Below are positions 41,374 through 48,417 of a DNA stretch of 64,000 nt, in pieces (position 1 is the stretch's first letter; each line of letters opens with the position of its first letter). Position numbers and translations under genes: made by a program. Source of the DNA: Macrostomum lignano (lineage: Eukaryota); NCBI GenBank assembly GCA_002269645.1, contig NIVC01000415.1:556771-620770 (forward strand), written 5' to 3'. Below the pieces are notes generated by a model. The model was given only the letters and a program-made list of their open reading frames with translations. It had not been told where the DNA came from and did not search any database.

Positions 41374-44300
41374 ATGAGGCTGCCGAGCTTCTGGCTTTTG
41401 CTGATGCACAGCTGCTTGCTCGCATCCGCTATGGACTGCTCCTACAAGCAACCATATGGTGAGCCTTGCTGTGTCTGTGTGTGCCTGTGTGTGTGTCTGT
41501 GTCTATTTAATTGTGTCTCTGCTTGTGTCTATGTGTCTATTTAATTGTGTCTCTGCTTGTGTCTATGTGTCTATTTAATTGTGTCTCTGCTTGTGTCTAT
41601 GTGTCTATTTAATTGTGTCTCTGCTTGTGTCTATGTGTCTATTTAATTGTGTCTCTGCTTGTGTCTATGTGTCTATTTAATTGTGTCTCTGCTTGTGTCT
41701 ATGTGTCTATTTAATTGTATCTGTGCTTGTGTTTGTTTAATTGTGTCTGCTTGTGTTTGTTTAATTGTGTCTGCTTGTGTTTGATTAATTGTGTCTGCTT
41801 GTGTTTGATTAATTGTGTCTGCTTGTGTTTGTTTAATTGTGTCTGCTTGTGTTTGATTAATTGTGTCTGCTTGTGTTTGATTAATTGTGTCTGCTTGTGT
41901 TTGATTAATTGTGTCTGCTTGTGTTTGATTAATTGTGTCTGCTTGTGTTTGATTAATTGTGTCTCTGCTTCTGTCTGTTAAATTGTGTCTTGCGTCTGAC
42001 TGTTTCTGTGATTGTGTCTGTCTGTGTCCGTGTTTGTGTCTGTCTGTGTCCATGTTTGTGTCTGTCTGTGTCCGTGTTTGTGTCTGTCTGTGTCCGTGTT
42101 TGTGTCTGTCTGTGTCCGTGTTTGTGTCTGTCTGTGTCCGTGTTTGTGTCTGTCTGTGTCCGTGTTTGTGTCTGTCTGTGTCCGTGTTTGTGTCTGTCTG
42201 TGTCCGTGTTTGTGTCTGTCTGTGTCCGCTCATGCCTATTAGTTTGAACGCAAATCAAAATGACAGTTAACTGCATGGCAGCCAATGAGAAGGCAGCAGC
42301 CCCGCCCATTCTGCTGGGCCCTGAGCACGCACTAAGCATGCGGATACGAACGCGCGGGCACAGACACAGGGTGTCTGCGGCCCTGACTTTCTCTTCATCA
42401 AGGCATGTTTAGAGAAGGATTGAAAATAAGCAATATCTACTCTATTTTCCAGTGACAGTGCAGCTGAGCAGGGCTGACGTTCTGCGCACCTGGCAACCCA
42501 GCGGTGCGCACTGCCGTTGGTGGGAGAGTCGGCAGTCAGAGACAAACCGATTCCCTGCTGCTGTGCGGTCCGGGCCTCGGTGGCTTGTGATGCAGCTGAG
42601 GCAGCCGATGATGCTGGAGGCGGTGAGCGTGCGAGACTGGGGTGAGTGACGCCGACCGACTCATTCTCATGATGCATGATGAGGCAGAGGGAGTCTGGGA
42701 CACACAGCGTGAGACAGTGTGAGACCAGCTAGCATCTAATTAGCACTCTGAGACAGTGTGAGACCAGCTAGCATCTAATTAGCACTCTGAGACAGTGTGA
42801 GACAGTGTGAGACCAGCTAACATCTAATTAGCACTCTGAGACAGTGTGAGACCAGCTAGCATCTAATTAGCACTCTGAGACAGTGTGAGACCAGCTAGCA
42901 TCTAATTATCACTCTGAGAGAGTGTGAGACCAGCTAGCATCTAATTAGCACTCTGAGACAGAGTGAGACCAGCTAACATCTAATTAGCACTCTGAGACAG
43001 TGTGAGACCAGCTAGCATCTAATTAGCACTCTGAGACAGTGTGAGACCAGCTAGCATCTAATTAGCACTCTGAGACAGTGTGAGACCAGCTAGCATCTAA
43101 TTAGCACTCTGAGACAGTGTGAGACCAGCTAGCATCTAATTAGCACTCTGAGACAGTGTGAGACCAGCTAGCATCTAATTAGCACTCTGAGACAGTGTGA
43201 GACCAGCTAGCATCTAATTAGCACTCTGAGACAGTGTGAGACCAGCTAGCAGCCAAGCACTCGTGTTGCAGATGGCCAGTGGCTCGCAGCAGCTCCGGTC
43301 GGCTCGCCCGTGTCAGCGGTCGGAGCCTCGAGCCTCCCGCTGGAGCTGCAGCTGGAGGATCCGTGCCGCGCCAGCTGGGATACCTTCGGCAGCAGCGACC
43401 GGTGGAGGCAGCTCAGAGAATCAAAAGCAGAAAAGGTTGGTCGGGTCAGTTTTCGGGTATTTCCGATTCCATATTTAAAAACTTAACAATATTCTCACGG
43501 CCAGCCGCTCACCAACTGCAGCCCGTATTCGAATTCATTCTGCTGAGAGGCTCCCCAGCGCTGGACTTTGCAGCCGTCCAACTGACTGGTAGGGTGAATT
43601 TTCTGATTCTCAGCTGCAGGTGAACAGCACAGGCTGGTACTAAAATCTATCGCTAATTAAGGTGTTAAAAGTCCTCCACTGGAACTGTCGGTGACCAATG
43701 TCCGAATGTGTCCGGAGCGGCATTTGGAGGCCATGGGCGACGGGGCCATCATCTGCTTCATGGTGCGCAGCTGCGAACTCGTTGGCGAGGATGGGCCGCA
43801 TCTGCCCAGCTGCTGCATCAGCTGCGACGGCCCCAACAGGCAGGACCTGCGGCCGGTATGTTATCTGTCTATCTGTCTGTCTATCTGTCTGTCTATCTGT
43901 CTGTCTATCTGTCTGTCTGTCTGTCTATCTATCTGTCTATCTATCTGTCTATCTGTCTATCTATCTATCTATCTGTCTATCGATCTGTCTATCTGTCTAT
44001 CTATCTGTCTATCTGTCTGTCTATCTATCTATCTATCTATCTATCTGTCTATCTATCTGTCTATCTATCTGTCTATCTATCTGTCTATCTGTCTGTCTAT
44101 CTATCTATCTATCTATCTGTCTATCTGTCTGTCTATCTATCTGTCTATCTATCTATCTATCTGTCTATCAGTCTGTCTATCTATCTATCTATCTATCTGT
44201 CTATCTATCTGTCTATCTGTCTCTCTATCTGTCTATCTGTCTATCTATCTATCTATCTATCTATCTATCTATCTATCTATCTATCTATCTATCTATCTGT

Positions 44301-47300: not shown

Positions 47301-48417
47301 CTGCCTGCCTGCCTGTCTGTCTGTCTGTCCGTCTGTCCGTTTGTCCGTTTGTCTGTCTGTCTGTCTGTCTGCCTGCCTGCCTGTCTGTCTGTCTGTCTGT
47401 CTGTCTGTCTGTCTGTCTGTCTGTCTGTCTGTCTGTCTGCCTGTCTGTCTGTCTGTCTGTCTGTCTGTCTGTCTGTCTGTCTGTCTGTCTGTCTGTCTGC
47501 CTGCCTGCCTGTCTGTCTGTCTGTCTGTCTGTCTGTCTGTCTGTCTGTCTGTCTGTCTGTCTGTCTGTCTGTCTGTCTGTCTGTCTGTCTGCCTGCCTGC
47601 CTGTCTGCCTACCTGCCTGCCTGCCTGCCTGTCTGTCTGTCTGTCTGTCTGCCTGCCTGCCTGTCTGTCTGTCTGTCTGTCTGTCTGTCTGTCTGTCTGC
47701 CTGTCTGTCTGTCTGTCTGTCTGTCTGTCTGTCTGTCTGTCTGTCTGTCTGTCTGTCTGTCTGTCTGTCTGTCTGTCTGTCTGCCTGCCTGCCTGTCTGT
47801 CTGTCTGTCTGTCTGTCTGTCTGTCTGTCTGCCTGTCTGTCTGCCTGCCTGTCTGTCTGTCTGTCTGTCTGCCTGCCTGCCTGCCTGTCTGCCTGCCTGC
47901 CTGCCTGCCTGTCTGTCTGTCTGTCTGTCTGCCTGCCTGCCTGTCTGTCTGTCTGTCTGTCTGTCTGTCTGTCTGTCTGTCTGTCTGTCTGTCTGTCTGT
48001 CTGTCTGTCTGTCTGTCTGTCTGTCTGTCTGTCTGTCCGCCCTCAAGTCAATTACACCAAACGATGCCATTGCAGAGGCAGCGAAGCCAGGATTTCAGAG
48101 GTCCAAAAAAGTCGGGCTGGAAAGTGAAACGGCCTAAAAAATCGGTCACTCTGCCACCGAGAGTGCGGCCACCGTCAATGCCTGGCGCTATCGACTGCCC
48201 ATACGATAACGACGAAAATTATCAAACGCTGAGCACAGGCGAGGAGACGCAGCCGTCAAGGCAAAAGTGTCTTTTGTCTGGAGCAGACTCTGGCGAATAC
48301 CTTCATATGGAGTCCAGAATTGCCATTGGTGGTCAGAGCGCGAGCGGCAGACAGCGTAATTCGACTGTGATGACCGCCTCAACGGCTGTGAAGTACATCA
48401 ACAGCCGAAAGCACTGA
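41374..48417 (+). CDS. Uncharacterised single-pass type I membrane protein, ~647 aa (signal peptide; possible discoidin-like and Ig-like C2 domains; TM; Tyr-motif tail)
   Basis: Exons 41374-41458, 42453-42641, 43272-43435, 43522-43588, 43662-43855, 44608-44740, 44864-45024, 45100-45268, 45738-45913, 46109-46265, 46923-47029 and 48076-48417 all have AG/GT ends and join in phase without stops (1944 nt). N-terminus [19 protein letters not shown]; [24 protein letters not shown] followed by KFRICR. Confidence 0.72.
41490..42232. repeat. Three adjacent TG-rich minisatellites (~34, 27 and 22 bp units) in intron 1 of the membrane-protein gene
   Basis: Read directly from the sequence. Confidence 0.93.
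42715..43250. repeat. 39-bp minisatellite GAGACAGTGTGAGACCAGCTAGCATCTAATTAGCACTCT
   Basis: Read directly from the sequence. Confidence 0.97.
43862..44598. repeat. (TCTA/TCTG)n microsatellite filling an intron
   Basis: Read directly from the sequence. Confidence 0.98.
45295..45643. repeat. (GTA)n trinucleotide microsatellite, ~116 units, intronic
   Basis: Read directly; source of the poly-Leu pseudo-ORF. Confidence 0.98.
46320..46790. repeat. 55-bp minisatellite GAGGTGGGTGTCGATTTATATTGGATGTAAATTTAGAGTGGAGCTCTGGCGGAGT
   Basis: ~8 near-identical units, intronic. Confidence 0.97.
47160..48036. repeat. (TCTG/CCTG)n microsatellite in the last intron of the membrane-protein gene
   Basis: Read directly from the sequence. 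Confidence 0.98.

Follow-up and report, generated by a model that had tools for sequence, protein, structure and literature searches.

A 12-exon immunoglobulin-superfamily receptor-like gene of Macrostomum lignano and its homogenized head cassette

In a 64,000-nucleotide (nt) stretch of the genome of the flatworm Macrostomum lignano (assembly GCA_002269645.1, contig NIVC01000415.1, positions 556,771 to 620,770 of the forward strand; this whole stretch is called the window, and positions are counted from its first letter), we confirmed an intact 12-exon gene at 41374-48417 (+), whose predicted product is a type I membrane protein of 647 amino acids (aa). Our reading of the gene as a whole, to which we give a probability of roughly 0.7, is that it encodes a receptor of the immunoglobulin superfamily (IgSF), with a probably lectin-like head, a cytoplasmic tail whose tyrosines lie in docking contexts, and a head cassette that would be kept alike among paralogues by gene conversion. 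Judged by sequence, the gene is a member of a multigene IgSF family, which these searches found only in M. lignano, and the head cassette of this family is homogenized at the DNA level between loci on different contigs. Both the family and the cassette, which we consider the most interesting features of the locus, were absent from an earlier model-made reading of the same DNA (the sequence-only reading), which had described a hidden 12-exon receptor-like gene. The public entries for this uncharacterized family are fragments, and the model presented here (signal peptide, head, three immunoglobulin (Ig) domains, transmembrane (TM) helix and tail) is the first complete one.

Gene structure and predicted protein

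The gene was rebuilt from the genome sequence by anchoring short, GC-rich blocks of coding appearance on splice signals and then joining them, which gave the following exons:

41374-41458, + strand, exon 1: start codon, signal-peptide-like segment (aa 1-19, nt 41374-41430) and start of the head
42453-42641, + strand, exon 2: aa 29-91, phase 1, first half of the conserved head
43272-43435, + strand, exon 3: aa 92-146, second half of the conserved head (DGQW...LEDPCRASW)
43522-43588, + strand, exon 4: aa 147-168, variable C-terminal strands of the head
43662-43855 and 44608-44740, + strand, exons 5 and 6: predicted Ig-like domain 1, aa ~173-277
44864-45024 and 45100-45268, + strand, exons 7 and 8: predicted Ig-like domain 2, aa 278-387
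45738-45913 and 46109-46265, + strand, exons 9 and 10: predicted Ig-like domain 3, aa 388-498
46923-47029, + strand, exon 11: predicted TM helix (aa ~507-529, about nt 46946-47014), then the first residues of the basic stop-transfer stretch
48076-48417, + strand, exon 12: cytoplasmic tail (113 aa) and stop codon

All 11 introns run from GT to AG (22 of 22 splice dinucleotides are canonical), and the spliced coding sequence of 1944 nt holds 647 codons plus the stop codon with no internal stop, where about 30 would be met in a random frame of this length. The peptides quoted in the sequence-only reading are all present, and its 12-exon gene was borne out together with its coordinates. The word "hidden" was right in one sense only: the list of open reading frames (ORFs) at the locus holds nothing but repeat read-throughs, so that the gene is invisible as a simple ORF, but fragmentary models of it were already in UniProt. 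One of these, the UniRef entry A0A1I8J516 (P0065), matches aa 93-498 (exons 3-10) without gaps at 100% identity, which confirms the seven junctions from 3/4 to 9/10, and another (P0001) differs from the window protein in one residue over the same range. Junction 2/3 is crossed by the database model P0003, and in P0002 and P0064 the tail starts at or beside the exon-12 acceptor. None of the database models joins all 12 exons, links exons 1-2 to the rest or contains the TM exon 11. The exon layout is matched, additionally, by that of an NCBI-annotated paralogue (P0007) in another locus (L001). An Rfam scan of 41000-49100 returned a single chance match below threshold, outside the gene.

Several of the M. 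lignano entries (A0A1I8G7F9, A0A1I8G816, A0A1I8J516, A0A1I8FRG6 and others) bear automatic names such as RHD, ZP, TMEM132, PLAT, SRCR or Vitellogenin domain-containing, which Pfam did not reproduce on the models tested, and some of the long UniRef models resemble fusions with neighbouring genes or with tandem copies of the family.

The N-terminal segment is signal-peptide-like, as had been proposed, with cleavage expected after ASA by the -3/-1 rule; exon 1 is not conserved between paralogues. For the stalk of the ectodomain, we ran AlphaFold with family alignments on two database proteins, P0001 (which covers the window ectodomain, aa 93-498) and P0007. In P0001, three beta-sandwich domains were predicted over residues 81-398 (aa ~173-490 of the gene model) with a predicted local distance difference test (pLDDT) score of 70-90, and in P0007 four such domains and a TM helix (pLDDT 70-90 over residues 180-600). 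Compared with the Protein Data Bank (PDB) by Foldseek, these models matched SYG-2 D1-D4 (the top match), CD22 d1-d3, nectin-1, Necl-4, ICAM-5, KIT and LILRB3, with E-values from 1e-9 to 1e-13 at an identity of 10-15%. Based on these predicted structures, the three Ig-like domains of the ectodomain appear to be real, in keeping with the Ig C2-like segments recognized earlier from the letters. Pfam, run on the full window protein at E<=10, returned no family, and phmmer with the same protein gave no match among PDB sequences; C2-set_2 matches were obtained in a few remote paralogues and were marginal.

Other properties of the chain point in the same direction. Each Ig domain follows a 1-0-1 exon phase pattern (exons 5, 7, 9 and 11 start in phase 1, with one phase-0 intron inside each domain), and candidate Ig cysteine pairs can be proposed from their spacing of 52-63 residues: C200/C206-C263, C314-C366 and C419-C471, the last two with a spacing of 52 residues each. 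C314 and C366 fall in two of the three cysteine columns that are invariant among the Ig domains of the family. The chain has seven N-glycosylation sequons, all but one of them in the ectodomain. The single TM segment of the sequence-only reading was recovered as the only hydrophobic one in the chain, with a Kyte-Doolittle peak of 3.28 at aa 510, and is followed by RICRRQR.

The tail, of 120 aa, contains four tyrosines: Y577 in YDND (48202-48204), Y583 in YQTL (48220-48222), Y609 in YLHM (48298-48300) and Y641 in YINS (48394-48396). All four lie in YxN or YxxL/I/V/M contexts, an outcome that was reached in only 0.1% of shuffled tails. The YDN, YQTL and YLHM motifs previously noted are therefore present and enriched by this shuffle test; the 113 aa given earlier for the tail are those encoded by exon 12, and a catalytic domain is lacking as claimed, since Pfam finds nothing in the protein. 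A close copy (P0002) retains YDN, YQTL and YxxM. Moreover, several tails that are otherwise unalignable share a C-terminal Y[IV]N (the window gene, P0007, P0009/P0010 and P0060), and acidic YE[DE] motifs are common among the tails of the family. Contexts of the YxN, Y[IV]N and YE[DE] kinds fit tyrosine kinase substrates and Grb2-type or Src-type SH2 docking, and we infer that the tail may serve for phosphotyrosine-dependent docking of SH2 proteins.

The fold of the head was approached by profile-profile comparison (hhalign), using profiles that included diverged heads (P0060/P0039 and P0044/P0051/P0055) and, as targets, an F-type-lectin alignment made from PDB matches and the C2 discoidin domain of factor VIII (FVIII), whose sequence was verified against the PDB. 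The scores were as follows:

Remote heads against F-type lectins: 28.0
All heads against FVIII C2, over 124 columns spanning the domain: 23.5
All heads against F-type lectins: 18.3
Null from 100 column shuffles: 12+-2, maximum 17-19
Positive control, F-type lectin against FVIII C2: 23.6
Ig and CUB decoys: 8-14

The alignments to F-type lectin and F5/8 type C domains extend over the whole length of the head and match the characteristic motifs of these domains: the T/S-W-Q-[PS]-S of the head stands opposite ATQSS/ITASS, its central motif opposite WWRVDL...V.SV.I and EWLQVDF...VTGV, and its last strand, FAAVQLTG, opposite LCEVEVYG and LRMEVLG. Differences are also clear, given that the head has no evident counterpart of the His/Arg triad by which F-type lectins bind fucose, that the match stays below every Pfam and PDB sequence threshold and that a jelly roll was not confirmed by structure prediction. 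Weighing this faint but specific remote similarity, we lean slightly towards a discoidin/F-type-lectin-like head of the galactose-binding-domain-like superfamily. A profile of seven diverse heads searched against PDB sequences gave only chance esterase matches (E 0.2-0.3). The possibility that the head is a cryptic Ig domain was rejected, as hhalign against the family's own Ig domains showed no similarity (P 0.25-0.55).

The family and its homogenized head cassette

In a word-index protein search, all 27 matches came from M. lignano, and a HMMER search of 1.84 billion representative proteins with a 15-member profile yielded 39 proteins at E<=1e-3, of which 20 were looked up: 18 are from M. lignano and two are frog VCAM-1, matched in the Ig domains alone (E~1e-6, marginal). 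The earlier statement that the protein is lineage-specific and assignable to no named family is thus upheld, save for these marginal VCAM-1 matches. Lineage-specific families of IgSF receptors are common in invertebrate genomes. At 50% identity, the present family falls into about 35 clusters, of which many consist of fragmentary models, and some members are arranged in tandem clusters (one locus of the same assembly, L002, has six head-exon copies in 97 kb); tblastn of the gene model against the 64-kb window found no second paralogue there. Outside the invariant segment of the head, the paralogue ectodomains share 21-40% protein identity, and the signal peptides and tails cannot be aligned. 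Our literature search found nothing relevant on this family, or on gene conversion or minisatellites in M. lignano.

The DNA of the head departs sharply from this picture. When 41300-48500 was compared by blastn with the paralogue loci L001 and L002, the only stretch to match was 42418-43417. Twelve copies from five loci were then aligned: the window copy and 11 more, which are spread over four further M. lignano loci and of which 10 have both halves. The features at the window locus are the following:

42443-43415, + strand, head cassette of ~970 bp: exon 2 and the complete intron 2, preceded by the final ~10 nt of intron 1 and followed by the first ~140 nt of exon 3
42710-43251, no strand assigned, 39-bp minisatellite in 13.6 copies, inside intron 2

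Between the window copy and each of the four paralogue copies that were compared together with their downstream protein, the cassette DNA is 97-98% identical (383 unique nt, intron included), and the pairwise values range over 96.9-98.4%. The remaining protein of cassette-sharing pairs ranges from 22% to 94% identity (22-31% in the highly divergent ones) and the identity of the cassette is unchanged over this range. The edges of the block are seen in the divergence of its successive parts from the consensus:

Intron 1, 10 nt before the exon-2 acceptor: 19%
Exon 2: 1.4%
Intron 2, unique sequence on the 5' side: 2.8%
Intron 2, unique sequence on the 3' side: 0%
Exon 3, conserved stretch: 2.2%
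Exon 3, final ~55 nt: 30%

The homology between paralogues fades over the final ~25-55 nt of exon 3, and this 3' edge is a mosaic, with patches common to different combinations of copies. The cassette does not coincide with a structural domain, since exon 4, which completes the head, is variable. The 39-bp unit is found in the same intron of the paralogues, where its copy number varies between about 1.7 and about 34; each of its three frames contains stops, and for this reason a coding role for the repeat was rejected.

Two further observations concern the copies themselves. A solitary array of the 39-bp minisatellite, without cassette exons, lies at 4510-5578 of L001, 4.5 kb upstream of P0007, and the cassette at 55671-55929 of L002 has a 5-bp deletion inside exon 2, so that this family member is probably a pseudogene.

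A remote member of the family, P0060 (BOX15_Mlig026732g2), has the same head in the same position at 32% identity, and its gene shows no similarity to the cassette DNA and no tandem repeat in the equivalent intron. The P0060 subfamily therefore offers a natural control: same head, no minisatellite and no homogenization. The cassette-bearing genes, whose homology elsewhere is close to the limit of detection, offer a clean example of domain-restricted concerted evolution with sharp boundaries.

Explanations and known systems

Recurrent gene conversion is, from the pattern of the sequences, the most likely cause of the near-identity of the cassette. The obvious competitor would be extreme purifying selection, acting either on the protein sequence of the head or on an RNA or DNA element within the cassette, an idea that draws on the membrane-distal, presumably ligand-binding position of the head and on its 87-97% protein identity in most paralogue models. 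Nevertheless, conservation is as high in the unique intron sequence and in the minisatellite as in the exons, most of the exon differences change an amino acid (non-synonymous to synonymous ratios of 21:7 and 17:9, roughly the neutral expectation), the cassette is equally alike in old and in young gene pairs, Rfam finds nothing in it, and exon 4 is variable, so that the block is not a whole protein domain. The neutral-like differences, the conserved intron, the mismatch with the domain and the mosaic edge argue against selection at the protein level and favour gene conversion, and we regard the selective explanation as very improbable. No better placed is the proposal that the cassette is a mobile exon unit, inserted independently in each gene by a transposon or by exon shuffling. 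A 5' edge sharp to within ~10 nt of the acceptor and a region rich in repeats and retroelements would suit it, but position and phase are constant, with a signal-peptide exon particular to each gene on one side and the variable exon 4 on the other, and no cassette copy lies outside family genes in the about 243 kb examined. In addition, the diverged head of the P0060 subfamily occupies the same place in the absence of cassette DNA, which indicates that the head module is ancestral to the family and speaks against independent insertion. If conversion is indeed responsible, the intronic minisatellite may be its initiator, because the homogenized block is centred on it, with flanks of ~270 and ~160 bp.

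At the level of the protein, the reading most in need of discussion is that of an adhesion or scavenger surface molecule acting without phosphotyrosine signalling, where YQTL and YLHM would be AP-2 YxxPhi endocytosis signals and the basic juxtamembrane stretch an anchor. Both motifs match the YxxPhi consensus, the Foldseek neighbours are largely adhesion molecules (nectins, ICAM, SYG-2 and CD22) and there is no catalytic domain; on the other side, two more tyrosines stand in YxN contexts, and the Y[IV]N and YE[DE] motifs that recur in unalignable tails are more typical of kinase substrates and SH2 docking. We hold this reading to be unlikely, though with a weight that should be kept in mind. 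That the locus is an unexpressed or decaying pseudogene, its frame a relic, seems improbable: the window gene is known here from sequence alone, its database models are all fragmentary and a paralogous cassette (L002 55671) is damaged by the 5-bp deletion, but the 1944-nt frame is open with every splice dinucleotide canonical, and the cysteine pairs, sequons, TM helix and tail motifs are intact. Finally, a divergent orthologue of nephrin/KIRREL (SYG-2/SYG-1) or DCBLD, which the sequence-only reading had named among the findings that would overturn it, is refuted at the level of the tools used. SYG-2 D1-D4 is the top Foldseek match, and a discoidin-like head, a TM helix and a tyrosine-rich tail do recall DCBLD; however, the identity with SYG-2 is 10-12%, a match generic to any multi-Ig chain, Pfam finds no Ig, FN3, CUB, LCCL or F5/8C domain, and sequence relatives outside M. 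lignano amount to the marginal VCAM-1 Ig matches.

The likeness to these two groups is instructive nonetheless. Nephrin/KIRREL, nectins, ICAM-5 and CD22 are the best structural matches to the Ig stalk and, like the window protein, have a single TM segment and a tyrosine-bearing tail; the window protein differs from nephrin/KIRREL in having three Ig domains instead of 5-9, no FN3 domain (which nephrin has) and an extra non-Ig head, and neither word-index nor profile searches gave nephrin/KIRREL sequence matches. DCBLD1/2 (ESDN) are type I, non-catalytic proteins with a discoidin-type ectodomain and several tail tyrosine motifs that recruit SH2 adaptors; they contain CUB and LCCL domains, no Ig domains and YxxP motifs in the tail. 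Their resemblance to the window protein, in the possible discoidin-type head and the docking-type tail, is one of analogy only, given that Pfam detects no CUB, LCCL or F5/8C domain in the latter, that its tail has no YxxP and that the sequences share no homology.

A closer analogy, in our view the closest, is provided by the paired-receptor families in which a ligand-binding N-domain exon has undergone conversion, as described for CEACAM1 with CEACAM3 and related genes, and for Siglec-5/14, KIR and LILR (PMC2832619). In CEACAM, members with an immunoreceptor tyrosine-based inhibitory motif (ITIM) and those with a motif like the immunoreceptor tyrosine-based activation motif (ITAM) keep similar ligand-binding domains through gene conversion that affects only the N-domain exon and part of the adjoining intron (PMC2832619). 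Paired receptors and the flatworm family are both single-pass IgSF multigene families whose membrane-distal exon or exons and intron are near-identical and whose stalk, TM segment and tails differ, and in CEACAM, too, the tracts of conversion are short, with the N-domain exon at their centre. The two systems differ in that the unit homogenized in the flatworm is part of an orphan, possibly lectin-like head, whereas in paired receptors it is an Ig V-type domain; in that the flatworm unit consists of two exons and a minisatellite intron in at least 12 copies, whereas paired receptors come in pairs; and in that we noticed in the flatworm family no dichotomy of ITIM/ITAM or charged TM residues comparable to the opposing modules of paired receptors.

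Several observations weigh against our overall reading. The gene model was built from genome sequence and database protein models alone, and junctions 1/2 and 10/11 and the exon-11 donor are backed only by canonical signals, frame and the analogy with the exon layout of P0007. In the tail, the motif classes of the shuffle test were picked after the sequence had been seen, and YQTL and YLHM are equally good as endocytic YxxPhi signals. By eye, without a pattern search, no ITIM ([SIVL]xYxx[ILV]) or ITAM (YxxL-x6-8-YxxL) was noticed in the tail motifs of 27 members, and in the TM segments examined no charged residue in mid-membrane was noted, likewise by eye; a true pairing of activating and inhibitory receptors is consequently not evident. 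The Ig domains of the window protein fall below Pfam thresholds. The head was matched by nothing in Pfam (at E<=10, with the window protein and the remote heads) or in PDB sequence and profile searches, its hhalign probabilities are just 1-23%, with both alignments thin, and AlphaFold gave it a pLDDT below 50 in P0001 and P0007 (as expected, because the alignment has almost no variation there). The discoidin-like region of the sequence-only reading is thus weakly supported: its hhalign scores of 23.5-28 stand above the shuffle null and near the positive control, and the Pfam and PDB searches are negative. With respect to conversion, the GC content of the cassette exons, overall and at third codon positions (GC3), is high but not unique in the gene, exon 5 being similar, so that a clear signature of GC-biased conversion is not seen.

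Taken as a mechanism, our reading would run as follows. The mature protein would present, from the outside inwards after the signal peptide, a membrane-distal head of ~150 aa (probably a discoidin/F-type-lectin-like jelly roll), three Ig domains, the TM helix and the tail. Recurrent gene conversion between loci, possibly begun in the minisatellite, would keep the cassette alike, every cassette-bearing member thereby showing essentially one head, to a common ligand or to each other, and the divergent tails, once phosphorylated on tyrosine, would couple the members to different intracellular outputs. A bolder extension, which we offer as speculative and rather doubtful, is that the family is a flatworm-specific repertoire of recognition receptors, inverse to that of classical immune receptors, in which minisatellite-seeded conversion holds a lectin-like head constant at a dozen loci or more, not all of them on one contig, and in which stalks and tails diversify. 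Were this true, one ligand, a glycan or the head itself, would be read out via many different intracellular programmes. M. lignano is a genetically tractable flatworm in which transgenesis is available, and both whether minisatellites seed ectopic conversion and why a single outermost domain is held constant can be tested in it.

Repeats and neighbouring genes in the window

The receptor gene lies downstream of Sec10-like and alpha-kinase genes, in a region flanked by retroelements. Tandem arrays, as detected by Tandem Repeats Finder, fill six of its 11 introns; besides the 39-bp minisatellite of intron 2, they are (no strand being assigned):

41490-42228, intron 1, filled by three minisatellites next to one another, with units of 34, 24 and 22 bp
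Intron 5, an array of the (TATC)n type
45288-45679, an (AGT)n array of about 130 copies in intron 8
46295-46800, a 55-bp minisatellite in 9.2 copies in intron 10
47162-48037, a (TGTC)n array of about 219 copies in intron 11

Directly downstream of the gene (48524-49022) there is a minisatellite with a 15-bp unit, TAGCACCAGGGGCTT, which is closely related to a 15-mer array, AGCACCAGGGGCGCC, in an intron of the P0060 gene (L005, 7244-8411).

Upstream of the receptor gene, exons of an exocyst Sec10/EXOC5-like gene were found at 17887-18411 and 19532-20011 (+; Pfam Sec10_HB, E 5e-15 and 6e-14), with minisatellite arrays around and between them, and two exons encoding an alpha-kinase (eEF2K-like) lie within 32508-33797 (+; Pfam Alpha_kinase, E 2e-10 and 9e-43), probably as parts of a larger gene of ~28.3-35.3 kb. 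Near the start of the window, an apparently intact retrotransposon without long terminal repeats (920-5633, -) encodes a 372-aa ORF1-like protein, a 492-aa endonuclease (Exo_endo_phos_2) and a 739-aa reverse transcriptase with RNase H. A set of arrays with 78-mer, 24-mer and 23-mer units occurs twice in this part of the window, at 39-224/5988-8721 and at 9027-9238/9480-12393, with offsets of 8988 and 3492 bp; the difference of ~5.5 kb between these offsets equals the retroelement at 920-5633, and the arrangement suggests a tandem duplication in which that element interrupted the first copy.

Three paralogous ORFs on the - strand (49580-49987, 52915-53520 and 60472-60873) share the N-terminal motif VEFGNCSSPMLSLLSFPET and have a hydrophobic stretch each, possibly a TM helix; Pfam gave no match for the one that was tested, and these ORFs may represent another lineage-specific family of small membrane proteins. 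Remnants of retroelements are present in the same part of the window, as an RNase H/RVT_3 ORF (58396-59643, -) and an integrase-core ORF (61711-62538, -).

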